Positions 3,252 to 52,562 of a stretch of 64,000 bases of DNA are shown one piece after another. Within the stretch, counting starts at the first letter, position 1. Each line of letters starts with the position of its first letter. The DNA lies in the NCBI RefSeq assembly GCF_003918875.1, contig NW_025765076.1:186001-250000 (forward strand), read 5' to 3'. This DNA is from Haliotis rubra (lineage: Eukaryota). Position numbers and translations under genes: made by a program. Below the pieces are notes generated by a model that saw only the letters and a program-made list of their open reading frames with translations, ran no database searches and had not been told where the DNA came from.

Positions 3252-3530
3252 CTTGGGAGGTCTCACAGAAATGCCCTGTGTTGCTGCCTTCACAGCCCTG
3301 GACACAGTGTCCTGTCTGGAAACTGCATATGTGCTTCTTACAGTTCCTGCTGCAGGTTAGATGACACCGGTCACCATACTTTCCACGGATGCATCCTTCT
3401 GAACATCTTCCAGTCTGTTTGTCACAGTAAACTTTCTGTCCGTCATAAGGGGCACAGTAACGACTGCAGTTCAGTTTACAGTTGTCTCCGTACTTCCCCA
3501 CAGGACACCCCTGTCCCCTTACACCTCCAA
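3252..3530 (-). CDS. Gene A exon 2: Cys-rich EGF-like (MEGF10/SREC-type) repeats, phase 1-1
   Basis: Acceptor tttcAG at 3532-3531, donor GTATGT at 3251; 279 nt open frame (V)GGVRGQGCPVGKYGDNCKLNCSRYC...CDKQTGRCSEGCIRGKYGDRC...CETSQ with CxxGxYGxxC motifs. Confidence 0.88.
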
Positions 3531-3762
3531 CTGAAAGGGAGAATGAGTTAGGTGAACCATACCGTGACTAGAAACAAATATACATTCATACAAGCTGCTG
3601 AACAGGGATCAAGGAGTGTACCTGCCCAGTGCCTGGGAAGTCAAGTAATTACTGGCTTCGACCCAAATCTGCTAATCACTTGTATAAACTATTCCCTTGT
3701 GTAAACAATGTCTGTGCATCTCACTCTTTCATCTCCTGTTTCTTATCCAGTTTATTGTATAT

Positions 3763-4250
3763 ATACTACTCCCTTAAANNNNNNNNNNNNNNNNNNNNNN
3801 NNNNNNNNNNNNNNNNNNNNNNNNNNNNNNNNNNNNNNNNNNNNNNNNNNNNNNNNNNNNNNNNNNNNNNNNNNNNNNNNNNNNNNNNNNNNNNNNNNNN
3901 NNNNNNNNNNNNNNNNNNNNNNTCTCAACAACTGCAAACCTTACGCAGATGGGTTGCACGAGGATCAAGCATCAAATTGCTGAAAAGCATGTGCAAATAT
4001 CGTACATGTGAACAGATGCGTTTTAGTGTAAAGTTTGTTAAAACTTCGTCAATTTTCACTGAGTTTCACCATTTATTGAACTCGTGACAATAATCATTTC
4101 AACGTTTCGATTTTTTTTACAGCACATTGGTACATGTGTAAACAGTACCTTTAAACAGTGTGGAATATTTTGCAAAATATAGTTTAGAACAGTTGACTGA
4201 AGTAAGTGGCTACATTTACACTAGCGAGTCTAAACTTTTGATGGGTAGTA
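3763..4250. mobile_element. Possible Tc1/mariner-type MITE spanning the gap
   Basis: Left TATACTACTCCCTTAAA and right TTTTGATGGGTAGTATA form an imperfect inverted pair ending in TA; the gap hides most of the left arm. Confidence 0.4.
3779..3922. other. Assembly gap (144 N)
   Basis: Run of N. Confidence 1.
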
Positions 4251-4717
4251 TACATGCAACACTGCAAGTAAATAGCCCAGAGACGTTGTGACATACAGTA
4301 AAAAAGAAGTTGTCATCCATAATTCTTCCAGTGTAGACAGTACGTATGGAACTGTGTTACTTTCTGTGTTTAAAACTTGTTTCACAACAAGAGAGAATTA
4401 GTAATCAACACAAAATGAAATCTTTCTACGTCACCAGCAACCAAAGCCACGGGCCCTCGCGAGAAATATTGTAGTTAATATTGCATGTTTCCAGTTTTAT
4501 GAGAACTGCATGTCAGCACTATGAGGATGTGCATATATCTGTGAATACCGTAGTAGTGTGTGATTGTTTATAGAAAATTCCCTATTGAAAATGGCAGTTA
4601 AAGCGTTAATATTTTAAAGTTCTGAGTCAGTTGATGTTTAGTGCTGTACTCTGTGCCAGTAGTTGATAATAACGTGATGCTAACTGTATGTAGATAGTTC
4701 ACACAGCATTAACTTAC

Positions 4718-4751
4718 CCAGTAGTAGGAATACCAGAACTCTGTCCAACAT
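4718..4751 (-). CDS. Gene A exon 1: signal peptide
   Basis: ATG at 4751, MLDRVLVFLLL then G|GTAAGT donor (phase 1); splicing to exon 2 gives MLDRVLVFLLLVGGVRG-QGC, a typical cleavable signal peptide. Confidence 0.8.
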
Positions 4752-4786
4752 TGTTCTTATGTCTGCATCACCCCTTCTGGAACGGT

Positions 4787-5702: not shown

Positions 5703-5880
5703 TGCACTCAGCAATATTCCAGCTTGATGACGGTGGCCTATAAATAATCGAATATGGACCAAACAATCCAGCTTTTCTAAACAGCATGACCATCGCTCTA
5801 CGCACATGGGATACGGTGACTAGTGTCAAGTAAATCAGCGAGTCTGACAAGCCAATCCCGTTTCTCGGCCTCTTTCGACA
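5703..5880 (+). repeat. Short interspersed repeat, copy 2
   Basis: GCACTCAGCAATATTCCAGC...TAAATAATCGAATATGGACCAAACAATCCAG...CAGCGAGTCTGACAAGCCAATCCCG aligns by eye to copy 1. Confidence 0.75.
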
Positions 5881-7150
5881 ATGTGTACACTTACTGGTGT
5901 ATTCCCCCAGGACGCAATCAGATAATACAAACACTGTACAATATGTACACTTACTGGTGTATTCCCCTAGGACGCCATGAGATAATACAAACACTGTACG
6001 ATGTGTACACTTACAGGTGTATTCCCCAGGACGCCATGAGATAATACAAACACTGTACAATGTGTACATTTACTAGGTTATTTGCCCATGACACCATGAG
6101 ATAATACTAACACTGTACAATGTGTACATTTACTGGAGTATCCCCCAAGACCCATGAGATAATGCAAACACTGTACAATGTGTACACTTACTGGTGTATT
6201 CCAAAGGACGTCATGAGATAATACAAACACTGTACAATGTGTACATTTACTAGGGTATTTTCCTAAGACGTCATGAGATAATACAAACACTGTACAATGT
6301 GTACATTTACTGGGGTATTTGCCCAGGACGCCATGAGATAATACAAACAGTGTACAATGTGTACACTTACTGGTGTATTCCCCAAGACGCCATGAGATAA
6401 TACAAACAGTGTACAATGTGTACATTTACTGGGGTATTTGCCCAGGACGCCATGAGATAATACAAGCACTGTACAATGTGTACACTTACTGGTGTATTCC
6501 CCAGGACGCCATCAGATAATACAAACAGTGTACAATGTGTACATTTACCAGGGTATTTTCCTAAGACGTCATGAGATAATACAAACACTGTACAATGTGT
6601 ACATTTACTGGGGTATTCCCCAAGACGCCATGAGATAATACAAACAGTGTACAATGTGTACACTTACTGGTGTATTCCCCAAGACGCCATGAGATAATAC
6701 AAACAGTGTACAATGTGTACATTTACTGGGGTATTTGCCCAGGACGCAATCAGATAATACAAACACTGTACAATGTGTACACTTACTGGTGTATTCCCCA
6801 GGACGCCATCAGATAATACAAACACTGTACAATGTGTACATTTACTGGGGTATTTGCCCAGGACGCCATGAGATAATACAAACAGTGTACAATGTGTACA
6901 CTTACTGGTGTATTCCCCAAGACGCCATGAGATAATACAAACAGTGTACAATGTGTACATTTACTGGGGTATTTGCCAAGGACGCCATGAGATAATACAA
7001 GCACTGTACAATGTGTACACTTACTGGTGTATTCCCCAGGTCACCATGAGATAATACAAACACTGTACAATGTGTACACTTACTGGTGTATTCCCCAGGA
7101 CGCCATGAGATAATACAAACACTGTACAATGTGTACATTTACTGGGGTAT
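5881..7150. repeat. 59/60-bp minisatellite, about 21 copies
   Basis: Unit TGTACAATGTGTACACTTACTGGTGTATTCCCCAGGACGCCATGAGATAATACAAACAC; two variants (CACTT..GGTGTATTCC and CATTT..GGGGTATTTG) largely alternate. Confidence 0.96.
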
Positions 7151-7418: not shown

Positions 7419-7482
7419 GAGAGAGAGACAGAGAGAGAGACAGAGACAGAGAGAGAGAGAGAGAGAGATAGAGAGAGAGAGA
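7419..7482. repeat. (GA)n microsatellite
   Basis: Direct observation. Confidence 0.95.
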
Positions 7483-7871: not shown

Positions 7872-10800
7872 CAAGTTCAAGTTCAAGTTCAGTTTATTCT
7901 CAAATAACCACGTTTGGTGGTACAAGAGAAAATCAAACATAATCCATTTAAATACATATAAATAAACATGACAAAATGACAGGTAGAACAGTTTAAAATG
8001 AAACAGAATTATGCCATAAATTAAGATCTATTAAGTAATTTATTGTCTATAGAAAGAGATGATTGAGGTTTAACCATTTTTGACAAAGAGTTTATCTAAT
8101 GCTAGCAGATATTTGGATAGATTTCTTATTTCTTTTGAATTTCTACTATTAAATATTTTCTTCAATGTTGATAAATTGGGGAAGTACATGTGTCTAGTTG
8201 GTAAATATTTCTATCTAATATCTGTAAGGGCTTCACATCTAAATAAGTAATGAAATTCGCCGCCTATTGCTGGTGAATTGCAAAGTTTACATGTTCTGTT
8301 TTTTCTTGCGATACCATGCCAACGACCAGTTTCTACCGGGAGATTGTGATTACAGGTTCTGTATTTCAAAATAGAAGAGTAAATATACGCTGGGAAGAGA
8401 AGATAGTTTTCAAATATGGGAGTATCTTTAATATGTTTATAATAAAATCCCTTAGAGCTATTTTCAATATCAGCTTTCCAACTTTGTTGGAACTGGTCTT
8501 TTAATACAGTCTCCACTTGTGAAACTAGCCATTGGCATGGTACGCTTACAGGGTTATAGAATACAAAAGATAAGCCACATTTATCTAATAAAGATTTAAC
8601 ATGATGCATCCAGGGATCAAAATCATTCTCAAAGATACTTTGTGCATATGCATAATTGTTGATCAGTTTTGATAATTTCTGCTGCATTCCAGGATTATTA
8701 AGTTTATGCCAATAACAAATAATACGCTTAGCTGCAGTGATATATAAAGGAAATCTTCCGAGTTCTCCATATACCATAAAAGTAGGGGTAGAATTTCGTA
8801 AACCGCTGGCCAATTTCAAAAATTTCAAATGTTTTTTCAATTATATTTAAATTTTCATATGCCCAAGTTTCGCAGCCATACAAAAGAATTGGGGCTATCA
8901 TAACATCAAATGCCTTAAGTAAACAGTCCAACAGGATATTATGATTTCTAGATTTTTTTAAAAGACAAAACATTGCTTTGGATGCGCTTGCTGCAAGGTT
9001 TTTGATTGATAGATAAAATTTCCTATTTCTACTAAATGTCACTCCAAGATAAGTATAGTTATCTACAATTTCAATTGGAGATTGTTCAAAGACAAAATTA
9101 AGTTTACTATTATTAGCAGGGCCACTTCCAAAAATTAAGACTTTCGTTTTATCAAGATTCACTTCTAATTTCCAAATTTTACAGTATTTGCTAAAAGAAT
9201 CTAAGGTACTCTGTAGTTCGGATGCAGAATCAGCAAACAGGACAGTGTCGTCGGCATAAAGAAGTACAATAAATGATAGACATAACTGTATGTTTACATT
9301 CTCGAGCATAACACTTTTACAACTGTCATCGATGAGAAATTGTTCTAAATCATTTATGAATAAACAAAATAAAAGAGGTGAAAGATTTTCCCCTTGGCGG
9401 ACGCCCGAATAACACTGAAAATAATCTGAGACCTTATCATTTGAACATACACAAGATTTGATATTTGCATACATGTTTTGTATAAGCGTAAAAAATTTAC
9501 CTGTAATTCCATTGTTAACTATTTTTTGCCAAAGTCCAATCCTCCATACATTATCAAAAGCTTAAGAAAAATCAATGAAAGCACAATATAACTTTCTTTT
9601 ACAGGCCTTTAAAATCTGAGTAAGCATGTTCAAAACAAATATGTTGTCGTTTGTGGAATGTTCTTTCCTAAAGCCTGCCTGCGCAGGGGTTAAAATATTG
9701 TTTGTTTCCAAGAAAATGTTCAGTCTGTTGTTCAATATACTAGTGAAAAGCTTTCCAAAGCAGCTTAAAATAGTGATTGGTCTATAGGCATTGGGGTCTG
9801 ATTTCTGGCCTTTACCTTTGTATATAGGTCTGATAGTGCCAGTCAACCATGCTTCGGGCATTATTCCTGTGGATAATATCACATTGAAATAATCAACAAA
9901 CAAAGGACCAAGTAGATCAGAGGAATCAATAAGATAGTCATTTTCAATGTTATCAATACCAGAAGATTTATTTATTTCGTTTTAGCTTTTTGATAGCATG
10001 TGTCACTTCTATCAAGGTAATATCATCATTTAATATGTGATCATCATAATCTTTAATTTCTTGATTTATTTCACAATCAGGAGTAGTCTGTTTACTATTG
10101 ATATGCTTGAAATGTTCAAAAAATTCTTTTATGTCTGGTATTTCAGAATAATAATATTTTTTACCTTTTGTTAGTATTTTCCAGAATTCTTTAGGGGAAT
10201 GCTTTTTTTTTTCTTACCAAGTGAGAGAATTCATTTTATACTTGTTTATATGCTTATTCAGACATTTCTTATATTCTTTTGAACATCGGCGATATTCAGC
10301 CTTATTAGAATTCGTCTTACTTTTAAAATACCAACGTTTTGATTTTTGAAAGCATTTGCGTTTTTCTCGGCATTCTTTTCCAAACCAAGGCTTATCATTA
10401 CAATCTCGTTTCGACACTGGTGGAGGCGAGCGTCTCACACCAAATGTTGCACGAGCTGCGTCAGCCAGAAGGTGCACTACCCCAGAGGCAAAGTCATTGA
10501 CTGCACGTGCTGGGTCGTCTTGACCTGATGTTGATTGCAATAAATGGGTTAATTCCAGGACAGAGATTTTGTTAATATTATTTACAAATGTTTTTGCTTC
10601 ATTTATGTCATACCGCTTTGGTTTTGTAGAAACTTCTTTTGGTGAATTGTTTGTTACATTTTCCCGCCTATTCTCAGGTGGTTTTGAGTTAGAGTTTAAT
10701 CCTATATTTAATGAGAAAGTGATGGGAGAGTGAACATCTGAATACAAAGGTGAAAAATCAATAACATCAAACTCAACAAAACATGGAAGACATTGTGGCG

Positions 10801-12330
10801 AGGATAAAACATAGTCAATTAAACTTGAGTCATTACATGTCACTTTACCTTTATCCTTATCTTTGTCTAGTCTCCCATTGCATATAAACATATTAGTGGT
10901 TTTACAAAGCTCTATGAGCTTAGGTCCTGAAGCATTAACCCTTCCTAAATCTTGGTTAGCTCTTGTTATAGGGAGAAAGGAGGCATAAAGAATATTTTCA
11001 GGTTCAAAAATATCTGTCATAGTTTCAATATCAATATCAAGTTCTTCAATTATATGCTTATCAACTGTGCAATACTCTTTCAATAGTCTAGTCCTAGCAT
11101 TGAAATCACCCATAAGTAAAATGTAATCACTCTTAGCAAGCATTTGTAAAATAGATTGTTCTACAAGGGGAAACATATCATCTTTTGCATATCTAGAACT
11201 ATCTGGTGGTAAATACACATTACCTAGGTAAAGATCATTATCAATATTAAGCAATTCTTTAGATATTCTATACCAGATAACATATTCACATTCATGGTTA
11301 TATAATGAGATATGGTCAGAAAAGGTGTTTCTTACTGCTAACCCAATACCACCAGACTTCCTACGGAAGCCTGGTCTATGGTGAAGATATAATTTGTAGC
11401 CTTCAATTTCTAGCTCATCAAGCGAATCTGTTTTCGTTTCCTGTAGGCCAATTATGTCAGCACTATTTAATAGAGACCTGAATTCAGGATACTGCAGTTT
11501 TCTTCTTAGACCACATACATTTAGACTGATAAATTTTAGTTTACTGGCAGAACTTGATGAATCATCCTTAGTAGCAGTTTCATTACTAAACTGGTTGATT
11601 GATGTAGGTTGTGTCTGTGGTATACTGTATTCTCCAGCTTCAGCGGTGTGAACTGACTTAAGGGGAGTTGTGCTGGTGTGGAGTTCATCAGTCTGGCTAG
11701 TGGAATTATTATCATAAGCATGTAGCATAGTATCTGATGATAATTCTGATACATCAATAGTGTTTATGTTCATTACAGATTCATCATATACATCATTTGT
11801 CAAAGTGTTGTGATCCTAGCTAGCATCTTCATTGTTATATGCAGCATCAATGTTACCAGCATCATTCATATGGGTTGAGGATTCATATACGCACATGTTT
11901 TTATCTGAGAGACATGGACTTTCAGGGGTAATAGATGTGTTGCTAACAGTGTTAGCATCAGCATTATTAGGCATTGTATGTTCAACACTTGTATCATTCA
12001 CATAAGAAGTTGATCTATAAATGTTCTTAGGTGGAGGAATAGCATGACTATCATCACTTATTATGGTATTGTAAAGGGTACTTGGATGGTGATCATTATA
12101 CATACAGTGTATATTACTATGTGTATCAACATTAGACATACTTTTACACTCACTAGTGTCCACACAAGGAAACATAACACAATTAGTGACAGTCAAAGGA
12201 GTAACACAATGAACAGTGCATGTATTTACACTGAGGTGCATATCATTTAGATAGCTGGAAGTATTCACAAGGGAAGATGCTTCATGTGTACCGTGGACAT
12301 AGCATGTAGCATTTGTCATAGCTGACAATA
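7872..12330 (-). mobile_element. Non-LTR retrotransposon (LINE), APE endonuclease + RT ORF2, frameshifted; RTEX/L2-CR1-like
   Basis: APE motifs (SLNVCGL, IGLQET, VYLPP, MGDFNAR, SLIDY, SDVH) in 10214-11803; RT motifs (YRPITILS, QAGFR, FIDFS/KAFD, GVRQGENLSPLLF, LLYADD, YTYLG) in 9562-9903 and 8728-9474; C-terminal HNLPVETGRW...CKLC...EFHYLFRC in 8211-8840; 3' end AATAAA followed by (CTTGAA)n tail near 7872-7898. The 5' boundary is uncertain. Confidence 0.93.
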
Positions 12331-14763: not shown

Positions 14764-14806
14764 TGACAGTGATGTAGAGGGAGTGGACAATGAAGTAGAT
14801 TATTTC

Positions 14807-15836
14807 ATGGATAAACTTAGAGAATGGGTACTGAACAGTTCAACGCCAATAGTACATGTAAACAGCCTACTGGCTCTATCTACTCAGACCATATTTTCCT
14901 ATGCTTCCCAGGGATGGGAGGACACTGCTTCAAACCAGAAGAACATACATCATTAAAAAATATAGCTGGGGGTAAATATCACCATTTTGGGATTGAAGCT
15001 GGAATTAAATAAAAACTGTCAAAACTGAATGGCTTACATCCATATGATGAACTTCATCTCCAGGTGAACATTGATCGATTACCTATATTCAAAGTACAAA
15101 TCACTCCTTCTGGCCAATTTTAGGTCTTATTCGAGAAAAAATTGAACCAGAACCATTTGTTATTGGCTTGTGGTTAGGGTCATCAAAACCAACTGACATC
15201 AATTCTTACCTGCAGCATTTCATTGATGAAATGAAAGATGTCATGGTCAGTGGTGTAACTGTGGGAAATAAATGCTATACGGTTATCATAGAAAATTTTG
15301 TGTGTGATATCCCTGCACGTGCACTTGTTAAACTCACCAAAGGACATAGTGGCTACCATGGATGTGATTGCTGTGAACAACCAGCAGAATATTTTATTCA
15401 CAGAATGACATTCCCTGATGTGAATGCTAGACTCAGAACTGATGTAGCTTTTGGTGAAATGTCATGTGAAGAACATCATCGCGGTGAATCCAGGTTGAAG
15501 GAATTAAACACAGGAATGGTAACACAATTCCCGCTTGACTACATGCATCTTATTTGCTTAGGCATAGTAAAGAAAATCATCAGTATCTGGACTAGAGGAC
15601 CATTACATGTCCGCATCGGAAGTGCAACTACAAACTTGTTGTCCAATTCTATCTTGGCCCTTGGCTCATTTTTGCCTCGAGAATTTGCACGGAAGGGAAG
15701 AAAATTTGAAAAAATTGAAAGATGGAAGGCTACAGAATTAAGAACATTTCTTTTATATACCGGACCTGTAGCCCTAAGAGGGAAATTGTCAAACATTATG
15801 TACAAAAACTTCATGATGCTTTCAGTTGGTGGGTGA
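14807..15836 (+). pseudogene. CMC/EnSpm-like DNA transposase fragment
   Basis: Broken frames give LREW...LPRDGRTLLQT, YHHFGI, LQVNIDRLP, FWPILG, then FVCDIPARALVKLTKGHSGYHGCDCC, FPLDYMHLICLG, RWKATELRTFLLYTGP, motifs of animal EnSpm-type transposases; stops, frameshifts and 3' truncation. Possible left terminus CCCAGATAGCAC near 12659. Confidence 0.88.
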
Positions 15837-17049
15837 AACATGGTCGGGAGTGCACGCTATGGCCACTCCACAAAATATACTTGATCGTATTATACTTGAC
15901 CTCCCTGAAGTCACACAAGATAGAGCTTTATTGATTATTGTTTATTCAGATCAAAGTACTTCAAGTTAGAAGAAGAAAAGTATAATCACAACCTGATGAT
16001 GGCAATGACAACTTACAGAACACTGGCTACAAATGTTTCTTCTGTACAACAGCTACTGTCTTACAATATTTACACGGAGTATGTCATTAAGTTACTACAG
16101 AAATTGTTTACGCAGCAGATATATATTTGAATAATTTTAATGGCGATACGTTCATAATGACAATATGTACACATGCATAAATCACATAAACTGTAAACCG
16201 TCTAGTATATACACAATCCAACATCCGGGGCGTGGACAGGGGTGACACATTTGACACAAGTTGCATCCAAAGATATCAGGGAATATGTTGTACTCTGACC
16301 TGCCAGATCCCCCAAGCCTGCGCAGCACCACCATTATTCAATAAGAAATATAAATATATTTAATACACAAGGAAGCTGATTAACAAACGTGTACTAATGT
16401 TGACATTTTCATTTATGCACATATGTTCCAGAAGCTACATAACTCATGATTTGATGGATTGTGTTGTCACTGCGCTAAACAATTACTTAACCTTTGTGTC
16501 TCGACCCGATAGATTCACAAATGAGGAAGTCGATACATAGTTCAGCTTGCTCAGTAATCTATTACCTCAAGTCTGATTACGTTTAAAACAGGTCTTCAGA
16601 TGGATGGGTGATGATGCAAGCGAATGCGGCTGCTCTTAATGATCCAGTATGTGACAGCAGGGACGGTTTGTACAAACACAATATTCATATAACCGTTCAT
16701 TGAATGAAATTACATTTGGAACGTCGATTACCAGTTATACATTATGTTTGCCACAGTACAACTTTGTCTGTCTGACAGGAAGCCACACACGCCCAGTAAT
16801 CATTTCATCCCTCATTCTGGAAGACAGGAAAGAGAGTTGGGACAGTATAGTGTAATATTACACCTTCCGCAACTCAGGCTTGCAGGACATACGGTTTCAC
16901 ATGAGAGCTAGCACACACAGGAAGAAATACATCTTGTAATATACCGATTTCCTTATTAATATTAAACAATATGTTTATTATATTTTCTTTATTATTTCAA
17001 ACAGAGCTCACAAAATCAGACTGATTTCAGTGTCACGAGTTAAGAAGAT

Positions 17050-30086: not shown

Positions 30087-30390
30087 CTATTCAAGTGGCG
30101 ATATGTACCCGACAGACGATCTAGGACGAGAGACATGGCCGCCCTTCCTAAGTTCAGTGTACGAGCCTCTTCCTGACTTATCCTTGACACCAGTCATCAG
30201 TTCTCCAGGGTAGCAGTCTGCTACAACAGGAATGTCGGGAGCCTCCTCCCTACCGGTGCCTTGGTTCTGGTCTGGTTCCACAATGTCCTCCTCTCTGATG
30301 TCCTCGTAGTGATGTAGCTCCAGGTAGTCGTGGATGGCGATGTCTGCCTGCTCCAGCTTAGCTTCCAGTTTCTGATCATCAACTTTATTC
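30087..30390 (-). CDS. Gene B last exon: cytoplasmic tail with Tyr motifs
   Basis: Acceptor ttacAG at 30392-30391, phase 2; (R)NKVDDQKLEAKLEQADIAIHDYLELHHYEDIREED...GSYTELRKG...VGYISPLE*, TAG at 30089-30087. Confidence 0.82.
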
Positions 30391-30804
30391 CTGTAACAAT
30401 CCCATTTAAGGTTATTGGGATATGTTCTCTATGTACATGATTGAAGTATATTACACGATTACAACGTACGGGAGATTGATGGGGCAATGGACGATAGCTG
30501 AACGTAAGCTGATAAGTTACATTACTATGCTTTAGTCTGTGTACATATCAGATTCTACCTATTTGTCATAAGTGAGTGTGGATGGGTGAGGTTTACACCG
30601 CACTCAAAGTGATGCAGGAACCCTGTGTCGAACCCATGGGGAGCAGACTGTCAAACTGAGAATAACATTCAGGCAGAATGCCAACATAATCGGAATCTCA
30701 CACGACCATGGGGCACAACTCTGCTCTGATGACTGTCAGACGTCATCGTGGTAGACCACTGAGTATACTGCTTGCTCAAAATCCTGTTGCGAATGTCAAC
30801 TGAC

Positions 30805-30929
30805 CGTGTGGGACACATTCCCTTTACGGTAGCAGATGTAGCCAGCGGTACATGCAGCCAGGAGGATGAAGACGACAAGCACAACCGATGTCACCGTGAC
30901 GGCGTTGGAGGCATCAGACACAGGTTCCC
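30805..30929 (-). CDS. Gene B transmembrane exon (phase 1-2)
   Basis: Acceptor ttccAG, donor GTCAGT; (G)EPVSDASNAVTVTSVVLVVFILLAACTAGYICYRKGMCPT(R): hydrophobic helix followed by RK; phases match both neighbouring exons. Confidence 0.87.
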
Positions 30930-31298
30930 CTGGAAGATGAATCAATAGTTATACTTACACATTTCACAGTTGTCTACGAAGCAATCACACCGCAAAACAG
31001 GGAATCAAGGTCGCATTAAAATCACCATAATTGTCTCCGTGATATTAATTACAGATGCAGCAAAGATGGTTGGGGTATTCCTAGTATTTATTGTTACGAT
31101 CTTTGTTGTTGTAATCAATATCAACATTTAGAACAAAGTTCCATGACATGCGATTTGTGATCTTTGACATGCGTGACATGCAACATTTTTGAAAGGACTT
31201 GAACACATAGGCGGAAGAATACAGAACATCGTGAACATAACTATTTTACGTCTGTGTCACATGTACGAGATCTGGTACCTACGACTGAAGATGTGTAC

Positions 31299-32209
31299 CT
31301 GGTTCACACGATCCAGACGGACAATCAGATGTTCGGCAGTTGTCGGTGCAGTTATCGCCGCACCTGGATCCAGTCGAGTTGCATCCCTGTACACAGACCC
31401 CGGATGTCACATCACAAACACCACCCGCACACCCGTCACACCCTGTGATACAAGATGTGTTACATGCTTCCTTGAGGCATTTCCCACATCCTACAACACA
31501 CGCACCTGCCTGGTTACACCTCTGGTGTTGACAGTTAGGCTGCATCGCCGTGAACACTTGGGGCCATACCAGCCATCAACACAACCGTAGACACACTCGC
31601 CAGTCTGGCTGTGACACTCAGGTGGACATGAATCTCCATCTGGACATTGTCCACCCGTGGTCAGGGAGGGGTTAGGTCGACAGGTGTCACTGCATGCTTC
31701 AGTACAGTCGTCACCATAGAAACCTTGTCTGCATCCCTCTGTACAGCCACTCTCACATCCTCCGACACAGTTCTCGCATGAGTGTCTACACTCTACTCCT
31801 GAATAAGGAGGATGACACTCCTCACAGGTTCCTGTGATCCTGTTGCAGGACTTACATCTGCTGGAACATGTCTTACATCCTGCTCCGTAGTAGGAGTGGC
31901 TGCAACCAGAGAAACAAGCTCCAGCCACCTGACAATACTCCCCATCACATCCACCTGGGCACCTGGTACAGCCTACCTGGAGAGTGTCACATGGCCTCTG
32001 ACAGGTGAGACCCTGGAATCCAGGTATACAACCATCAGTACATCTCCCAATACCTTTGTCAGGGAGCAGCTCACACGTGTGGTACCTGCACCTGCTGCTG
32101 CAATCATCCTGGCAGTTGGGGCCGAAATATCCTCTGTGGCACTTTGTACTGCATCGACCTGTCTGTTCATCACACTCAGTACAATGCTGGATGTCGGGAC
32201 ATTTAGCAC
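31299..32209 (-). CDS. Gene B extracellular Cys-rich EGF-like exon (MEGF10/SREC/Draper-like); 1-nt frameshift near 31538
   Basis: Acceptor tcacAG at 32211-32210, donor at 31298; ORFs 31491-32243 and 31279-31557 join (CSRRCS/PNCQHQRC); repeated CxxGxYGxxC and CxxxTGxC motifs. Confidence 0.88.
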
Positions 32210-32882
32210 CTGTGAATATAATCCCCAAATATATAACTGACAAATCTGAAACTTTATAGTGCTCATAAGTTCTACTTGTATACAGTTACCATCGTCTTGA
32301 GCAATACATCTGTACAATATGTGAGAGGATCATGGCGATCTTGCTTTATATGCCCACATGGTCATGAAATTAAATACTAGGATCCCAAAAAGACATTTCT
32401 CAATCCAGTGACATACAGTAGGTAACATGTACCACAGATCCTCAAATGAAGCAGTATCAATCAACGCATAAGCGAGAGATTACGAAGTGTTATGTCTGTA
32501 AAGTCCTGTGCATGTGTACATAGAACCAATAGCTAATACTTGTACTTGGACGTAACCATAATAACTGTAATGCATATGAACAGATTACATACCCAGCTTA
32601 CAGTCTGCATTTGAAACATACACAACCACGCTGATATGAAGCCTTCCTGCCAGGAACCTATGTTTATGGCTTGGAATCCCAGCTTCTAGGTAAGAACAAT
32701 GTTCATGGCTTTCGCCAAGATGGCACGCATCATAGATCAGACTTTGCTTCCATGATCAGATTTACACGTCGACTCATAACTGTTTGAAGTTGCATTAAAC
32801 TAAACCCATTCACTAAACCCATTCACCTCACTCACTTAATTATGACACGATTTACTTGTATACCCACTCACTCATTCCTTAC

Positions 32883-32934
32883 CTTGGGAGTAAATGACTA
32901 TGTACGCCGTGACTACGAGTTGAAGGAATGGCAT
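32883..32934 (-). CDS. Gene B signal-peptide exon
   Basis: ATG at 32934, MPFLQLVVTAYIVIYSQ then G|GTAAGG donor, phase 1; upstream acceptor tttcAG near 32942. Confidence 0.78.
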
Positions 32935-35577: not shown

Positions 35578-35622
35578 ATTCATTGCACTCAGTACAATGC
35601 TGGTTGTTGGGGCATTTAGCAC
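35578..35622 (-). pseudogene. Gene C: 5' stub of an EGF-like exon paralogous to gene B
   Basis: Acceptor ctacAG then GTGCTAAATGCCCCAACAACCAGCATTGTACTGAGTGCAATGAA (AKCPNNQHCTECNE) versus gene B GTGCTAAATGTCCCGACATCCAGCATTGTACTGAGTGTGATGAA; similarity stops at the Tc1-derived sequence. Confidence 0.82.
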
Positions 35623-36398
35623 CTGTAGATGAATATACCTTATAAACAATGAAAGTTCTTTGCTATAAAATGATCGGTCAGTAATTTATTTCAAAACACA
35701 TGATCACTTGATTCATTTTTACCATGCTGCGGCGCGTGTGTATCTCTGAAAGGTCTTACGACAGCTCGAAATGTTACTACCAAAAATAGGAAATGGTCGG
35801 TTTGACAAGTACAGTGACGCGGTATCAAGTGAAGATCTTTACATGGGTGATATCAAAAGTCATCGATCTACTCGACAATGACAACTGATCTGCTATATTT
35901 CCACAGAGTGGCGTACTTTAGAAACGTTTCTTTTATCAGTATTTAACCACATCTAACAAAATACAAGGATCGGTTAAAGCCACTATTGTGTGGATCCTGG
36001 TATCATAATTGTCAAACAATGAACTATGGATTTGAATGTTGACTATAGAATGTTAACTGAATGTATGTTGCTTTCACCTATATTTAATAAACATTCCTGT
36101 TTTGCCTGAGATCATCTCTGCTTGTATTTTCAGGCGTGGAGATCCAGAAGCTAGTTCCCCGAAATAATTCTAGGTTTGAACGGTCACACAGCAAGACAAA
36201 GGAGCTGAGACAGATGTTAGCGTAAGCTCAACCGGTACAAGTTGGGCACACCTAACCGACAGGCTGTGTTACCAACAAACATCGTCAACTAGTATCATTT
36301 TTAACAACTCATTACAATTCTGATGCCAGCATGTTTACGACCCCATGATAATGTCTGATCTGTTCTGTCACAAACAAATACGTTACACATCTGCTCAC

Positions 36399-39612: not shown

Positions 39613-39750
39613 NNNNNNNNNNNNNNNNNNNNNNNNNNNNNNNNNNNNNNNNNNNNNNNNNNNNNNNNNNNNNNNNNNNNNNNNNNNNNNNNNNNNNNNN
39701 NNNNNNNNNNNNNNNNNNNNNNNNNNNNNNNNNNNNNNNNNNNNNNNNNN
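39613..39750. other. Assembly gap (138 N)
   Basis: Run of N. Confidence 1.
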
Positions 39751-41867: not shown

Positions 41868-44270
41868 CTAAAACAGCGACAGTATTCGATCATGTTTCTT
41901 TGTTCGTGCAATGTCTGCTGCTGTTGCGCCATTTTTGTTTACATCCTTGACGTCTACACCCGGCAGCGGGAGGAGGTACTGCACCATCTGCACATTGCAT
42001 TCCTCATCCCCTCCAGCACAAGCGACGTGGAGGATGCTGTGACCGTCATCATCAACAACAGTTAAATCACAACCTTCCTGTAGAAGGAGATCCAACACGT
42101 CTATGTGACCTCCCTCTGCTGCCACCATGGCTGCTGTCTTCCCGTAGCGGCCTCTGCTGTTGATGTCAATAGACGTGTCCATCAGGACCTTCTCCACAAT
42201 GTCCTTGTTTCCTCCACTAGAAGCCAGATGCAGTATGTTGTTATTGTAATCATCCACCAGCTTCATGTCGCCCCCTTCTTTTAAAAGTAAGTCAAATATA
42301 ACTTTACAACCGCGGTTGGCTGCCACCATTAATGGCGTCCTTCCCTCTCGCCCAGCACTGTTGATGTTGAAAAGGTGTTTGAAGAGCAGATAGTTGACAA
42401 TGCTCACATTATCTCGGATGCAGGCCAGTTGGAGCATATTATCACCATAACTGTCCACGAGTAGAAGACGTGCATGTTCTCTCGTGAGTAGGTCCAACAC
42501 GGGTCTGTTTCCCTGACGTGCCGCCAACATGGCTGGTGTCTGTCCTCGGCGGTCTCTCGTGTCGATGTCAACAAGTTCAAGTTTCAGGAGTTCATTCACC
42601 ATCTTCACATTGTTTCCTAAGCAGGCCAGATGTAGGATGTTCATTCCATCAGCATCAACGTGTGAAACATCGCCCCCTTTACACACTGTGAAGTAGAAGA
42701 CGTCAATGTTGTCAAACTCAGCCGCCATCATCATGGGAGTGCGGCCATGTTTTCCTTTACAGTTGATATCAAAATACCCTTCAGAGACAATATACTTCAC
42801 CATCTCTGTGTGTCCTCCCATACACGCCACGTGGAGGATGTTGTCGTCATCCTCATCCAATACAAACACATCACACTGTTTTGTCAACAGGTACTTGAAC
42901 ACTTCTATATTGCCATTCTCAGCTGCCATCATCATGGCAGTTCGCCCTTTGTATTTCCCCCTTTTGTTGACGTCAAAGTTGAACCTTGAGAGTACATATT
43001 CCACCATATCCACATGACCCCACGACAGGCTGCATGGAACACAGTATCTTCTTCATCATCATCAAGAGACAAATCGCATCCTTCACCCATAAGAAAATCG
43101 AAAACATCCTTACGGCCACTCTCTGCCGCAAGGATCAACATCCTCCTATCATTCAGTCCTTCCGTAACATCCAGTGAAGCGATGTGCATTATCATTGGTA
43201 GATCCCCTCCCACACAGGCAACATAAATAAGCTTGTTCCCAAAGCTGTCTCTAATGGTGATGTCCCCTCCTTTACGCCTGACGACCTCAAAGGCCTCCTT
43301 GTGCCCTGTCTCGGCTGCCGCCATCAGAGGAGTCCTCCCCTTTCTGTCCGTGCCATGGATGAGGGCCCTGCGCTGGTTTCTGTCACATGTGTGCTGCACC
43401 ATACTCCCGTTACCGCCCCTGCACACCACATGGAGGATGTTGTTGCCATCAACGTCTTCCAGAGATCTGTCTCCTCCGTCTCGTAAGAGTAAGTTGTACA
43501 CCTCTTTGTGTCCATACTCTGCAGCAACCATCAAGGGCGTTCTTCCATCATTCCTCCTACTGTTGATGCCCACAATGCGTTTTGAGAGGATATGCTGTAC
43601 AATGTGTACCTTTCCTCCAGCACAGGCCACGTGGAGGATGTTCATCCCCTTGTCATCCAGCAGCGACGTCTGGCCTCCTTTCTCTATGATCAGGTCGAAA
43701 ATCCGTTTGGAACCCGTCCACGCTGCCTTCATTAGCGGTGTCCTGCCCAAGTTCCCTCTACAGTTGATATTGAATATCCGACGTGAGAGCAGATCTTCAG
43801 CAATAAACAGATGGCCTTTAAGACATGCCAGGTGGAGAAGGTTGTCACCGTCATCTCCAACAAGTCTCATGTCGCAGTGTTTGTTGTTTACAAGTTCCAA
43901 GTAGACGTGTTTGCACCCATGACGTGCTGCCAACATCACCGGCGTCAATCTGCTTTTGCCTTTTACATTGATGTCAATAGTTCCTTCAGAGAGAATCAAC
44001 CTGACTATTTTGAGATTATTTCTGACGCAAGCAATATGCAGAATGGTGTTATTGTCTTCATCCACTGCCGACAGATCGGCTCCCTTCCGGCGGAGTAGCT
44101 TAAACACGTCCACGTGCTGGCCATCTGCTGCTGCCATCACTGGTGTCCTGCCGTTTGACCACCGGGTGTTGATGTCAACTCCATCTCGCCGTAAGATGCG
44201 AGTGACTTCATCCACGCTCCCCGAGCAGCAGGCACCGTACAGATCCGCGTTGTTGGTGGTACAGGACATC
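41868..44270 (-). CDS. Gene D: single large exon encoding ~800-aa ankyrin-repeat protein (~23 repeats); 1-nt frameshift near 43018
   Basis: ORFs 42932-44314 and 41868-43013 join at ACRG/GHVDMVEY; repeated GRTPLMxAA and NILHVAC motifs; acceptor tgtcAG at 44272-44271 followed by G-ATG. Confidence 0.93.
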
Positions 44271-45173: not shown

Positions 45174-47581
45174 CCGGTGTAGATGTATTTGCCCATGTGG
45201 GTGTAGATGTGGTACATGAGGGAGTAGATGTGGTCCATGTGGGTGTAGATGTGGTCCAGGTAGGTGTAGATGTGGTCCATGTAGGTGTAGATGTGGTCCA
45301 AGTGGGTGTAGATGTGGTCCATGTGGGTGTAGATGTGGCCTTTGTTGGTGCAGATGTGGTCCATGTGGGTGTAGATGTGGTCAATGTAGGTGTAGATGTG
45401 GTCCATGTGGGTGAAGATGTGGTCCATGTGGGTGTAGATGTGGTCCATGTGGGTGTAGATGTGGTCCATGTGGGTGTAGATGTGGTCCAAGTGGGTGTAG
45501 ATGTGGTCCATGTAGGTGTAGATGTGGTCCATGTCGGTGTAGATGTGGTCCATGTGGGTGTAGATGTGGTCCATGTAGGTGTAGATGTGGTCAATGTTAG
45601 TGTAGATGTGGTCCATGTGGGTGGAGATGTGGTCTATGTGGGTGAAGATGTGGTCCGTGTGGGTGTAGATGTGGTCCATGTAGGTGTAGATGTGGTCCAT
45701 ATCGGTGTTGATGTGGTCCATGTAGGTGTAGATGTCGCCTTTGTAGCAGTAGATGTGGCCTTTGTAGCAGTAGATGTGGCCTTAGTCAGCGTAGACGTGG
45801 TCCATGTGGGTGTAGATGTGGTCCATGTCGGAGTAGATGTGGTCCATTTGTGGTATAGATGTGGTCTTAGTCGGTGTACATGTGGTCTATGTAGGTGCAG
45901 ATGTGGTCCATGTGGGTGTAGATGTGGTCCATGTGGGAGGAAATGTGGTCTATGTGGGTGTAGATGTGGTCCATGTGGGTGTAGATGTGGTCCATGTGGG
46001 AGGAAATGTGGTCTATGTGGGTGTAGATGTGGTCCATGTGGGTGAAAATATGGTCCATGCCGGTGGAGATGTGGTCCACGTGGGTGAAGATGTGGTCCAT
46101 GTAGGTGTAGATGTGGTCCATGAGGGTGTAGATGTGGTCCACGTGGTTGAAGATGTGGCCCATGTAGGTGTAGATGTGGTCCATGTGGGTGTAGATGTGG
46201 TCCATGTGGGTGGAGATGTGGTCTATGTGGGTGAAGATGTGGTCCGTGTGGGTGTAGATGTGGTCCATGTAGGTGTGGATGTGGGTCCTTATGTGTGGTA
46301 TGTGGTCCATGTAGCAGTAGATGTGGCCTTAGTCAGCGTAGATGTGGTCCATGTTGGTGTAGATGTTGCCTTAGTAGCAGTAGATGTATGGCCCATGTAG
46401 GTGAAGATGTGGTCCATGTAGGTGTAGATGTGGTCCATGTAGGTGTTGAAGTGGTCCATGTAGGTGTAGATGAGGCCTTAGTAGCAGTAGGTATGGCCCA
46501 TGTAGGTGTAGATGTGGTCCATGTAGGTGAAGATGTGGCCTTTGTAGCAGTAGATGTGGTCCATGTAGGTGTTGATGTGGTCCATGTAGGTGTAGAAGTG
46601 GTCCATGTCGGCGTAGGTGTGGTCCATGTGGGTGTAGATGTGGTCCATGTCGGAGTTGAAGTGGTCCATGTAGGTGTAGATGAGGCCTTTGTAGCAGTAG
46701 ATGTGGCCCATGTCAGTGTAGATGTGGTCCATGTGGGTGTAGATGTGGTCCATGTGGGTGTAGATGTGGTCCATGTGGGTGTAGATGTGGTCCATGTGGG
46801 TGTAGATGTGGTCCATGTGGGTGTAGATGTGGTCCATGTGGGTGTAGATGTGGTCCATGTAGGTGTAGATGTGGTCCATGTGGGTGTAGATGTGGTCCAT
46901 GTGGGTGTAGATGTGGTCCATGTCGGAGTAGAAGTGGTCCATGTAGGTGTAGATGAGGCCTTTGTAGCAGTAGATGTGGCCCATGTCAGTGTAGATGTGG
47001 TCCATGTGGGTGTAGATGTGGTCCATGTGGGTGTAGATGTGGTCCATGTCGGAGTAGAAGTGGTCCATGTAGGTGTAGATGAGGCCTTTGTAGCAGTAGA
47101 TGTGGTCCATGTAGGTGTAGGTGTGGTCCATGTTGGTGTAGACGTGGTCCATGTAGGTGTAGATGTGGTCCATGAGGGTGTAGATGTGGTCCACGTGGTT
47201 GAAGATGTGGTCCATGTCGGAGTAGAAGTGGTCCATGTAGGTGTAGATGAGGCCTTTGTAGCAGTAGATGTGGCCCATGTCAGTGTAGATGTGGTCCATG
47301 TGGTTGTAGATGTGGTCTATGTGAGTGTAGATGTGGTCCATGTGGGTGTAGATGTGGTCCATGTGGGTGTAGATGTGGCCCAGGTGGGTGTAGATGTGGT
47401 CCATGTGGGTGTAGATGTGATCAATGTGGGTGTAGATTTGGTCAATGTGAGTGTAGATGTGGTCTATGTGGGTATAGATGTGGTCCATGTAGGTGTAGGT
47501 GTGGTCCATGTTGGTGTAGGTGTGGTCCATGTGGGTGTAGACGTGGTCCATGTCGGTGTAGATGTACTTCTGTAGTTGTAC
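45174..47581 (-). CDS. Gene F: probable mucin-like exon, 21-bp repeat encoding about 114 x TTSTPTW (variants TATKATS); a few frameshifts
   Basis: Unit length is a multiple of 3; common variants are synonymous in this frame (CCC/CCT/CCG, ACA/ACT/ACC/ACG, TCT/TCA); acceptor gtttAG at 47583-47582; possible GC donor at 45173; same strand as flanking genes. Confidence 0.65.
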
Positions 47582-48773: not shown

Positions 48774-48923
48774 NNNNNNNNNNNNNNNNNNNNNNNNNNN
48801 NNNNNNNNNNNNNNNNNNNNNNNNNNNNNNNNNNNNNNNNNNNNNNNNNNNNNNNNNNNNNNNNNNNNNNNNNNNNNNNNNNNNNNNNNNNNNNNNNNNN
48901 NNNNNNNNNNNNNNNNNNNNNNN
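48774..48923. other. Assembly gap (150 N)
   Basis: Run of N. Confidence 1.
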
Positions 48924-48939
48924 GAAAAGTTTTTGTCAG

Positions 48940-49157
48940 AGAGAGCATGTGTATACGTGTGAGAGAGTGAGTGTGTGTATACGTGTGCTAGAGACTGTAT
49001 GTACGTGCGAGACAGAGTGTACGTATTGGGGAGGGTGTATACGTGTGAGAGAGTGTGTGTATACGTGGTAGAGACTGTATGTACGTGCGAGAGAAAGTGT
49101 GTGTGTACGTATGGGGGGAGGGTGCATATGTGTGAGAGAGTGTGTGTATACGTGTGT
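48940..49157. repeat. GT/GA-rich degenerate tandem repeat
   Basis: GTGTATACGTGTGAGAGAGTG...GAGACTGTATGTACGTGCGAGA repeated about 3 times. Confidence 0.8.
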
Positions 49158-49845
49158 TTGTTAAGCCCTGTGCCGGCCATTCACAACTGTGCGCGGACCG
49201 TTGTATAGATCCATTATCTGACATTCTCAATCGATAATACAGTTTCCTTACAGCGTCTCACTTTATCCAGCATTAAGTTTCTGTAGTGTCTTAAAGGCTT
49301 CCTAACTCACATTGAAATGTTTGAAAAGGTTCAAGTATTTCAGTCCCCTGAGCTCACAACTACATAACAGCTGGTGAATGCCACTCTTCGTCAGCACAGT
49401 GTCAACACGTGCAGCGATCCCGGCTATGGACATGCATACATGCATAAGTGGATCATGACAACACAAGGTATGCATTCTGTCAGTGGTGGCACACATATTG
49501 TCGATTTATTAAACAGGCACACTCCGTTCATGGTCTGCCAGTTATATACAATACACGCATCACACTCGGTCATACAGCAAGCGTGGATACGTCTGTAGTA
49601 TCAGGATCATGGTTGGGTTTAGGGACAGAAACACCATTCTCGTTATGTGATTTTAATTTACTAATCATAAACTTGTTTTACAGAAGAAAAGCACAGCTAG
49701 TAAAACAGGAAACAAAAGGACAACGAAATCGAAATATTTGCAGTTTTGATACTATATAGAACTATTTTCCCGTCACCAGGGATCTGTACTTCTCATCATA
49801 TGGGTGGATGTCCAGCTGGGACAGAGTGGACAGAGATGACCAGCA

Positions 49846-52321
49846 TCACGTGGACATGCTGTCGGAGAGAGACTGGTGACCCTGTTCTCTGGCTACCATG
49901 GCAGCTGTAGACCCGAAGTGGTTTCTCGCCTCCACGTCGACCATGTCCATCTGGATGATGTGGTTCACCATCCCCTCATTCCCTCCACTGCATGCAACAT
50001 GGAGGACGTTGTCCCCATTCACTGTCAACACAGACACGTCACATTCTTCACTGACGAGAAAGTCAAACACCTTAATGTGCCCATGCTTTGCTGCCAACAT
50101 GAGCGGTGTCATTCCCAGGAGTTCTGTACAGTTGATGTCGACCAAGTCGCGCAGTACCACGTACTCCACCATCGCCAGGTGGCCGCCGCTGCAGGCAACG
50201 TGCAGCAGGTTATCGCCTTCGTCATTCACGAGAGACACATCGGCTCCCCGTCTGATCAGAAGGTCCACCACGCTGACATAACCCATGCGTGCCGCGACCA
50301 TCACTGCCGTCCGCCCGTACTGGTTCCTGGTGTCCAGGTTTACATGGTATTTGTACAGGATGTGCTTCACCATGTCCACGTGACCTCCATAGCAAGCCAC
50401 ATGGAGGATGTTGTCCCCGTGGTCACTGACCAGTGCCACATCGCCGCCTCTGCTGACCAGCAGGTCAAACACTCCTTTATGACCCCAGCGAGCGGCGATC
50501 ATGACAGGGGTTCGGCCGTACTCGCCTCTGCTGTTGATGTCCACGACATGCTTGGACAGGACATACTTCACAATGTCGGCGTTGCCGCCGATACACACCA
50601 CGTGGAGGATGTTGTTGTTGTAGTCATCCACCAGAGACACGTCACCACCTTTACTGATGAGCAAGTCCAGCACGTCTCTGTGTCCCCCCTCAGCTGCTGC
50701 CATCAGCGGCGTTCCCCCGTACTGACCTCCACTGTTGATGTCTACGATGTCCAGAGATATGATGCACTCCACCATCGTCACGTGTCCTCCAATACAGGCA
50801 ACATGAAGGATGCTGTCGCCGTTGTCGTCAACACATCCCAGGTCACTTCCTTTACAGACAAGAAAGTAAAACACATCTCGATGTCCAGACTCGGCAGCTA
50901 GCATCACCGCAGTCCTCCCATACCTGCCTCTGCTGTTGATGTCAGCATTACTCAGTGAGAGGACGTATTTCACCATTTCTACATCATCTCCCAAGGAAGC
51001 GATGTGAAGGATGTTGTTACCGTCATCGTCCACCAAGGATGGGTCACCGCCTTTACGTACGAGGACATCAAACACTTGTCTGTTTCCCGCTAAAGCTGCC
51101 ACCATGAGTGGCGTCCGTCCCCCCTTCCCCCGACAGTTGATGTCAAACAGATCCAGACTGAGGACGTGCAGCACCGTCTCATCATGGCCTCCAAGACAGG
51201 CTATGTGGAGGAGGTTGTTGCGATCGGCATCAGTCACAGACAAATCACACCCATGCTGTTTAAGTACACCAATTACTGTTGTGTGACCCCTCTCTGCTGC
51301 AACCATCAGCGGTGTGCGTCCATTGCTTCCTGTACTGTTGATTCCAGAAATGTTGTCGGAGATGACACGCCGTACAATCTCCACACATCCACCACGACAC
51401 GCCATGTGAAGTATGTTATTGTTGCTAGTGTCTTTTAGCGACAGGTCAGCTCCTTTACTGACCAGCAAGTCGAACACACCTCTGTGACCTCCCTCTGCTG
51501 CAAGCATCAATGGCGTCTGTCCGTTGCCTGATTTACTGTTGATACGGGAGATGCGTTTAGAGAGAAAATGGAGCACCATGTTGTTACTTCCACCCCGACA
51601 CGCCGCATGGAGGACGTTTTCACCATTAGAGTCCACAAGTGATACATCACCACCATTATCAACAAGTACTTTTAACACGCCCTGTGTCCATACATTGCCG
51701 CAATCATCACGGGTGTCCGCCCATTCATTCCCCGACAGTTGACGCCGACAATGTGCTTAGACAGGATGTGCTTGACCATAGGCACATTGTCTCTATGACA
51801 GGCCAGGTGTAAGATGGTGTCGCCTTGTTCGCTCAGTAGAGACAGGTCCGCTCCAACCCTCTCCAGGAGATCAAACAGACTAACATGTCCACCCCATGCC
51901 GCTTTCATGACTGGTGTTCGTCCAAACTTTCCTCGACTGTCTATATCTATAAAGTTTTGTGAAAGGATGTATTTCACTATCTCTATATTACCTCCCAAAC
52001 AGGCGAAGTGGAGAATGTTGTCATCATCATTGCTCAAGCGAGTTACGTCACTTCCGTTTGTAACAAGGAAGTGGAACACCTCGTCATGTCCACACCTGGC
52101 TGCTAGCATCACCGGTGTCCTACCGACCCGCCCTTCAGCGTTCACGTCAGTTTGAGCACTGGACACCAGGTGTTGGACTTGTTGCAACTTGCCTCTTTTA
52201 CAGGCGACGTGGAGGTCACTGTCAGAACTCGCCTCGCGTGGTGGAGGAGGGACATGATCGACATTGATGTGACCTTCACCTTCCGAAGATGGAGGAGGAG
52301 AGGGAGCGCTGTCTGTTGTCT
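49846..52321 (-). CDS. Gene E: large ankyrin-repeat exon (~825 aa, ~23 repeats, Pro-rich linker at N-terminus); 1-nt frameshift near 51680
   Basis: Acceptor ttgcAG at 52323-52322 (phase 1); ETTDSAPSPPPSSEG...HVPPPPREASSDSDLHVAC; ORFs 51672-52394 and 49846-51678 join at MYGHR/GVLKVL. Confidence 0.93.
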
Positions 52322-52524
52322 CTGCAACATCAAATATATATTCAAACCATGCATGACTGTTTTGCCTAAAACCAAGCTGTAGCTCAGCTGACAACAGCTA
52401 AGACAGACACTTACAAGTTGAGTTTTTCTGATATGCAACTCTTGATATTAGTGGCATTATAACTTGACAAATTCAATGATATGTGAGCTGACATCACCTT
52501 GCGTAGAGTCGATGGTGACCATAC

Positions 52525-52562
52525 CTTCAAGTCTGCCAGGATTCTCCATCACGATGTCGTAT
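52525..52562 (-). CDS. Candidate small upstream exon of gene E
   Basis: atgcAG acceptor, G|GTATGG donor, phase 2-1, (R)YDIVMENPGRLE in frame with the ankyrin exon; contains a possible start Met. Confidence 0.45.

Follow-up and report, generated by a model that had tools for sequence, protein, structure and literature searches.

A tandem cluster of EGF-like receptor and ankyrin-array genes in the abalone Haliotis rubra, with a candidate fused EGF-like–transmembrane–ankyrin receptor

Overview

A stretch of 64,000 nt from the abalone Haliotis rubra (RefSeq assembly GCF_003918875.1, contig NW_025765076.1, positions 186,001 to 250,000; referred to here as the window, with coordinates counted from its first base) probably carries a co-oriented tandem gene cluster, conserved within Haliotis, that mixes three related protein designs made from shared exon-sized modules. 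In the first design, that of genes E and D, the product would be a cytosolic protein of ankyrin (ANK) repeats only, with ~24 repeats arranged as double repeats of ~67 aa. The second, represented by gene B and the dead fragment C, would be a type I receptor resembling SREC and MEGF proteins, with a short tail containing tyrosine motifs. Gene A is the candidate for the third: a chimeric type I receptor in which a two-module epidermal growth factor (EGF)-like ectodomain is followed by one transmembrane (TM) helix and a cytoplasmic ankyrin array.

The exons for the signal peptide, the ectodomain and the ANK array are flanked by phase-1 introns, and local duplication together with exon shuffling may have recombined these modules. 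The fused receptors would recognize a ligand outside the cell by means of their EGF-like modules, and the ankyrin array would serve as a docking platform inside it. Their ANK-only neighbors could be soluble versions of this platform acting as adaptors, regulators or competitors. The genes and their parts, all on the minus strand, are as follows.

49846..52549, minus strand: gene E, predicted cytosolic ankyrin-array protein of ~842 aa (Pfam, orthologues, splice sites read in the sequence)
52549-52498, minus strand: gene E exon 1, ATG, 17 codons + 1 nt, kept in H. rufescens
52321-49846, minus strand: gene E exon 2, linker, ~24 ANK repeats and stop
41868..44269, minus strand: gene D, single coding exon, predicted cytosolic ankyrin-array protein of ~800 aa, own ATG at 44269
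35579-35637, minus strand: relic C, 59 bp, acceptor and opening ~17 codons from the ectodomain exon of a B-type gene, 85% identity to 32166-32220
30087..32934, minus strand: gene B, 463-aa type I receptor (RNA contigs, rebuilt coding sequence)
32934-32883, minus strand: gene B exon 1, signal peptide
32209-31299, minus strand: gene B exon 2, Cys-rich EGF-like ectodomain, 304 codons, phase 1-1
30929-30805, minus strand: gene B exon 3, TM
30389-30087, minus strand: gene B exon 4, tail with YLEL, YEDI, YTEL and YISP
3252..4751, minus strand: gene A, 5' part of a predicted EGF-like–TM–ankyrin receptor gene (similarity to protein P0058, splice sites read in the sequence)
4751-4718, minus strand: gene A exon 1, signal peptide, phase 1
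3530-3252, minus strand: gene A exon 2, 12-Cys ectodomain, 279 nt, phase 1-1

A first-pass annotation of the window had proposed six minus-strand units, of which E, D, B, A and relic C stand; the sixth, 'mucin F', is a 21-bp minisatellite, discussed below. Its suggestion that the modules lie in phase-1 exons was borne out by the ectodomain exons of B (1-1, from RNA joints) and A (1-1) and by the ANK exon of E, which starts in phase 1. The dimeric ankyrin repeat that it described is also there, as off-diagonal alignment matches with a period of ~201 nt, equivalent to double repeats of ~67 aa.

Gene A and the predicted fused receptors

The ectodomain encoded by gene A is 78% identical in aa sequence to that of P0058, and all 12 Cys are invariant over 11 fused proteins. 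Both introns of the gene are in phase 1. A signal peptide and a two-module, 12-Cys ectodomain in a phase 1-1 exon characterize the fused receptors of Haliotis, and gene A has both. Its locus is collinear with H. asinina locus L005, and the ratio of non-synonymous to synonymous substitution (dN/dS) is 0.30-0.39. In the H. asinina A-type gene, the TM exon lies ~150 bp and the ANK exon ~2.5 kb past the ectodomain exon; the window holds a 22-bp satellite there. The TM, micro-exon and ANK exons of gene A are expected beyond the window start, or else they are missing. A profile of the A-type module matches B-type ectodomains with E values of 1e-9 to 1e-11, plus many molluscan MEGF-like proteins; the ectodomain of gene A is homologous to the repeats of gene B.

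The first-pass annotation had raised the possibility of fused EGF–TM–ANK receptors and suggested a proteome search for proteins carrying both parts. RefSeq models do predict such receptors, and gene A appears to be the 5' end of one. Among the 120 closest ANK homologues, five (P0058, P0037, P0032, P0047 and P0051) place a signal peptide, a Cys-rich module and a TM helix ahead of the ankyrin array, and targeted searches added more. The architecture is predicted by RefSeq models in four Haliotis species:

H. asinina: P0058, P0037
H. cracherodii: P0032, P0047, P0051, P0182, P0279-81
H. rufescens: P0278, P0284, P0289, P0290
H. rubra: P0293

The number of ectodomain modules reaches 5.5 in P0182, which also has the ANK array. 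Exact-block mapping of P0037 gave six exons, namely signal peptide, ectodomain (1-1), TM, two micro-exons and one exon for the ANK array. The 830-aa RefSeq model of P0058 merges two tandem fused units (L005 10001-37725), its second ANK exon lying 22 kb away. In the first unit the ANK open reading frame (ORF) stops after 328 codons, which makes the real unit ~504 aa long, compared with 499-521 aa in other species. Some fused genes have NAGNAG isoform pairs, with a one-residue difference where the signal-peptide exon is joined.

An AlphaFold model of the N-terminal 200 residues of fused proteins had a predicted local distance difference test score (pLDDT) of 48, too low for fold matching, with only the signal-peptide and TM helices predicted. 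When the N-terminal regions of P0058 and P0037 were used as queries in word-based searches, only Haliotis proteins were returned, a result that word and length limits make uninformative on other molluscs. Literature searches found no relevant paper on an EGF–TM–ANK receptor, nor on nSTAND3 in oysters. In RefSeq the EGF-like–TM–ankyrin design sits under misleading names, e.g. 'ankyrin repeat domain-containing protein 50-like'. To judge from the RefSeq predictions, gene A represents a receptor type not described before, in which one protein combines EGF-like and ankyrin parts.

The ankyrin-array genes E and D

Tandem ANK repeats, the defining feature of ankyrin-repeat proteins, are found in both E (Pfam Ank_2, E 1e-110) and D (Pfam Ank, E 1e-60 to 1e-66). 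Neither a signal peptide nor a TM segment was found in the two proteins. When a 610-aa ANK ORF was used as a query, hundreds of Haliotis proteins matched and none closer was found outside Haliotis. The arrays of D (NADLYGAC), E (SDSDLHVAC) and the ANK exons of the fused genes (…(D/N)(T/Y)DL…A…) have a common start point, …DLxxAC….

Orthologues of E are P0001 (88% identity) and P0005 (83%); those of D are intact at 801 and 803 aa in H. asinina and H. rufescens. In both species the E and D orthologues are intact, on one strand and 4-4.5 kb apart. The E orthologues are annotated there at 754 aa; in three species the frame is open upstream past the annotated start to a conserved acceptor, and a first exon of 17 codons, MENPGRLEGMVTIDSTQ, whose ATG lies at 52549, is also conserved in H. 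rufescens. We infer the two-exon model of gene E from this conservation. Compared with H. asinina and H. rufescens over ~750-800 codons, dN/dS is 0.12-0.16 for gene E and 0.18-0.19 for gene D, and both are therefore constrained genes.

Two peculiarities of E orthologues concern their annotation. In H. rufescens (L001 8382-9910), the linker before the array consists of ~25 in-frame copies of a 60-bp (20-aa) repeat, SSDSDHHGACVPPVPPQRTS, and this region is annotated as a separate 528-aa product. In H. rubra (L007 10001-12266), the orthologue is annotated as two proteins of 486 and 218 aa. The site of this split differs from that of the frameshift in the window (see below), which hints at an indel error in the underlying assembly as well.

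Gene B and relic C

RNA contigs show that gene B is transcribed and spliced. They fix the introns at 32882-32210 and 31298-30930, both GT-AG; the acceptor at 30389, which opens the last exon, comes from a loose RNA contig end. The rebuilt coding sequence, with N (translated X) at a missing base for which reads give A on the plus strand, comprises 52 + 912 + 125 + 303 = 1392 nt and encodes 463 aa with no internal stop. This mapping, one of the checks proposed at the outset, established B as a spliced and expressed gene with EGF-like, TM and Tyr-tail parts. One RNA contig extends 128 nt beyond 30090, consistent with a 3' untranslated region (UTR) that enters the adjoining 32-bp satellite.

H. 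asinina has two B-type copies in tandem, and the orthologue of gene B is the second of them (463 aa; 86% aa identity, dS 0.26, dN/dS 0.27). The first copy is P0121, of 460 aa, and where H. asinina keeps it intact the window has relic C, which translates as GAKCPNNQHCTECNE. Relic C is a fragment of a lost B-type copy, giving one copy and a relic in the window versus two copies in H. asinina.

Relatives of gene B carry NCBI names such as SREC-, MEGF6/10/11-, CED-1- and draper-like. Pfam recognized no family in the Cys-rich exons of the window (E up to 10 for those of gene B) or in eight full-length relatives (E up to 1). Sequence searches of the PDB with a single protein, the A-type module and a 24-sequence profile gave nothing meaningful; phmmer and the profile matched no chain, not even that of SCARF1. 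For the AlphaFold model of P0121 (mean pLDDT 62), the best Foldseek match was an N-terminal fragment of human SCARF1 (8hna, E 2.2e-5, probability 0.99), followed by laminin-type EGF modules, with low TM-scores. At the level of the fold only, and with moderate confidence, the ectodomain of gene B can be called EGF-like or SREC-like. In an alignment of 24 B-type proteins the tails share a double-tyrosine motif, 'YQxLxxYxEI', followed by 'VLAD', 'YTxL' and a C-terminal 'YxxP'; none of these motifs matches the canonical patterns of the immunoreceptor tyrosine-based activation or inhibition motifs (ITAM, ITIM) or NPxY.

Clustering and conservation across Haliotis

The locus has collinear orthologous counterparts in H. 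asinina, H. rufescens and H. rubra. The window is collinear with the first two at 82-87% identity, and comparison DNA from H. rubra is ~96% identical to it over gene E. The order in H. asinina, with every gene on the same strand, is E, D, a B-type gene (460 aa), a second B-type gene (463 aa) and two A-type fused units; an additional EGF-like exon lies upstream on the opposite strand. A second block, B-type, B-type and A-type-ANK, lies ~58 kb away on CM074529.1 in inverted orientation. It is repeated on an unplaced H. asinina scaffold, which is probably a haplotig of this block. The fused gene for P0037, the only gene of these kinds at its locus, is 2 Mb away on the same chromosome. Elsewhere the two families are separate: no ANK gene lies within 10 kb of a B-type pair on another chromosome (L008), and an ANK array on a third one (L010) is without an EGF neighbor.

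The co-clustering, for which the first-pass annotation had proposed a genome-wide test, is found at two separately sampled places on one H. asinina chromosome, or three with the P0037 locus, but not at L008 or L010. The association of EGF and ANK genes is real but regional, on one chromosome arm rather than genome-wide; clustering was judged from four or five sampled loci, too few for statistics. The proposal of a birth-and-death family fits B-type genes, whose copy number differs between species, but not D and E, which stand alone under purifying selection. A dN/dS check had also been suggested, and D, E, A and B all proved to be under purifying selection.

Comparison with known systems

Gene B resembles SREC/SCARF and MEGF10/Draper/CED-1 in its type I layout, in which a signal peptide precedes a series of Cys-rich EGF-like modules, followed by one TM segment and a tail with YxxL-type motifs. 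A chain of EGF-like modules as a type I ectodomain, the mark of SREC/SCARF, is present in the gene B family with moderate support. The family differs from SREC in its tail of ~80 aa, where SREC has a long Ser/Pro-rich one, and in having no detectable sequence homology to SCARF1. B-type modules, read from the sequence, also differ from classical EGF in having C-x3-C rather than C-x-C spacing. For the EMI domain of MEGF10/Draper/CED-1 there was no Pfam match in the B exons of the window (E up to 10) or in eight full-length relatives (E up to 1). As to the NPxY and YxxL/ITAM motifs of those receptors, the rebuilt B protein lacks NPxY and its Tyr spacing is not that of an ITAM.

The A-type fused proteins recall Notch, which likewise combines EGF-like modules outside the cell with a single TM helix and ankyrin repeats inside it, and a language-model feature search (Atlas) placed Notch clusters nearest to them, at 0.89, which is to be taken as a lead only. 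The likeness to Notch drawn in the first-pass annotation holds for this overall layout but goes no further. Pfam gives ANK only in P0278 and P0182, with none of LNR, NOD, RAM or PEST, and nothing in residues 1-200 of P0037; PF00066 is not in the precomputed Pfam lists. With no Notch-specific module found, membership of the Notch family was rejected. Furthermore, the fused ectodomain has only two small modules, there are ~10 to 20+ ANK repeats as against seven in Notch, and the array begins ~25-45 residues past the membrane and has sequences of the family of arrays expanded in abalone rather than of Notch.

Homologous arrays are found in nSTAND3–ankyrin proteins, which are NLR-like. One of these, P0093, carries an nSTAND3 nucleoside triphosphatase (NTPase) domain and shares 41% identity with E across 91% of its length. 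The D, E, A-type and P0037-type proteins differ in being without the NTPase domain, and no match to nSTAND3 was found in D, E, P0278 or P0182.

Enrichment of ANK domains on one non-syntenic chromosome of H. gigantea and on its H. asinina counterpart has been described, with the same automatic names (ankyrin, PP6 regulatory subunit) (PMC12627906), and ANK genes have been loosely tied to defence and stress resilience (PMC12627906; PMC5405107). The searched text of these two papers makes no mention of EGF-like partners, fused receptors or this locus. Identification of the locus with the ANK-rich 'Chr9' of PMC12627906 was dropped, the accession arithmetic being ambiguous.

Alternative explanations

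Several observations count against a cluster of three related designs. The fused architecture is taken from RefSeq gene predictions, and one of these, P0058, runs two tandem fused units together. The copy of gene A could be truncated, its TM and ANK exons falling outside the window. Only five of the 120 closest ANK homologues have the ectodomain, D and E are 1:1 orthologues with low dN/dS, unlike a fast-evolving recognition repertoire, and the Cys-rich modules go unrecognized in Pfam and PDB sequence searches. The loci L008 and L010, with EGF genes only and ANK genes only, point in the same direction and favor an incidental adjacency. On such an account two separately expanded families share a region prone to duplication, the fused genes are by-products, and B, D and E do not cooperate. 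The ANK family is indeed very large (2251 matches among the candidates scored), its genes pile up on particular abalone chromosomes in the data of PMC12627906, and D and E have their own starts with no signal peptide or TM segment. Against this, H. asinina has the same interleaved gene order, ANK E is next to ANK D in H. rufescens and H. rubra as well, the block of two B-type genes and an A-type-ANK gene is found twice, and fused genes have been conserved across four species and show constraint in their evolution. Incidental adjacency is considered unlikely. It is improbable, too, that the fused proteins are annotation artefacts in which an EGF–TM gene has been joined to an adjacent ANK gene, leaving A as a small secreted or membrane EGF-like gene. 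The merged P0058 model, the separate 178-aa model that spans the ectodomain/TM part of its second unit, and the ability of the ANK exon to stand alone with its own ATG, as in gene D, would all fit such errors. However, two subfamilies with only 34% identity share the architecture, an alignable linker from TM to ANK and conserved micro-exons, in independent predictions from four species, and compact genes such as that for P0037 (4.3 kb) leave no space for a second promoter or a tail exon. The NAGNAG isoform pairs may also point to transcript-informed models.

The remaining alternative is a decaying locus, with B, D and E reduced to pseudogenes in this species. Each of the three appears as two overlapping ORFs and is one base short relative to intact orthologues: gene E has GGG where three species have GGGG (G run near 51684), gene D is short in a G run near 43020, and gene B lacks one T after 31538. 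For gene B, public contigs from four runs, two DNA-like and two labelled 'RNA?' (one of the latter, X9, giving spliced contigs), all insert one base after 31538. As all four read sets contain the missing base, the frameshift in B is an assembly error, and those in D and E probably are as well. No further stops or indels occur in 6.4 kb of coding sequence, and dN/dS of 0.12-0.27 for B, D and E also weighs against decay, which we regard as very improbable. In this assembly single-base deletions may mimic pseudogenes, and caution is needed. A cluster of three designs built from shared modules remains the reading that we prefer.

Satellites, mobile elements and gaps

About half of the window is satellite DNA, as found by Tandem Repeats Finder (TRF), from which the following repeats come. 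No strand is assigned to them.

36..3189 (22-bp unit 36-3013): satellite, 22-bp unit with a 123-bp higher-order part; fills intron 2 of gene A
5878-7150: satellite, 119-bp unit
17046-30080: satellite, 32-bp unit, 13 kb; begins directly after the gene B stop codon
45193-47565: minisatellite, 21-bp unit, 113 copies; intergenic between E and D
53391-53984: satellite, 19-bp unit
54299-55862: satellite, 81-bp unit
57901-64000: satellite, 66-bp unit

The minisatellite had been annotated as the mucin F gene, the supposed source of a stalk module. A mucin gene would have a long, uninterrupted Pro/Thr/Ser-rich ORF with a signal peptide, conserved in relatives, and the array does not show this. Read from the consensus, five of the six frames of the 21-bp unit are free of stops; across the array itself, the TTSTPTW frame contains five stops and switches for ~450 bp mid-array. 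In H. asinina the array is absent, the flanks abutting around a single 'acatctacacc' proto-unit, and the H. rubra comparison DNA has 286 copies versus 113 in the window, a 2.5-fold difference. These findings rule out a gene at 45193-47565, and 'mucin F' is, on its sequence, a hypervariable, non-coding intergenic minisatellite. Satellite arrays in this genome may mimic coding mucins, which calls for caution.

The three big gene-adjacent satellites (22, 32 and 21 bp) are represented by one to ~5 proto-copies at the matching H. asinina sites. The precursor of the 22-bp satellite is a ~56-bp proto-repeat right behind the ectodomain exon (L005 34829-34884), and that of the 32-bp satellite consists of ~5 copies (L003 21285-21452). 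The 21-bp array and the other large arrays appear from these comparisons to be lineage-specific satellite expansions. The 32-bp satellite probably belongs to the 3' UTR of gene B or to its downstream region.

Mobile elements and assembly gaps make up the rest of the annotated features.

8211-12328, minus strand: non-LTR retrotransposon (long interspersed nuclear element, LINE) with endonuclease and reverse transcriptase, split into several ORFs
34539-35270: transposase-like ORF, weak helix-turn-helix (HTH) match, unclassified; adjoins relic C
3779-3922: gap (run of N) in intron 1 of gene A
39613-39750: gap (run of N), intergenic, gene D to relic C
48774-48923: gap (run of N), intergenic, in the low-complexity/satellite tract between gene E and the 21-bp array

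A 222-aa ORF at 15168-15836 (plus strand), possibly part of a transposase, contains a Cys/His-rich motif and is not matched by Pfam. None of the three gaps interrupts a recognisable exon. The gap at 48774-48923 is bordered by a CA-rich low-complexity tract (48924-49180), whose H. asinina counterpart (L002 13114-14595) is a 40-bp satellite, and the gap is probably due to the repeat tract at this site.

Implications

Molluscs have no adaptive immunity and depend on expanded families of receptors, most of which are known by automatic names only. It is possible, though for now doubtful, that abalone possess an uncharacterised class of single-pass receptors, with an SREC-like EGF ectodomain linked directly to a long cytoplasmic ankyrin array, shuffled through phase-1 exons in clusters shared with ANK-only and EGF–TM–Tyr paralogues; together with the nSTAND3–ankyrin genes, these receptors would form a lineage-specific repertoire for innate recognition and signalling. 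Within one small region, the locus shows different proteins put together from ectodomain, membrane-anchor and ankyrin-platform parts. If the fused proteins are real receptors, their small ectodomain and defined cytoplasmic scaffold would make them tractable for the study of ligand recognition and downstream signalling in abalone, which are farmed and suffer from serious diseases.

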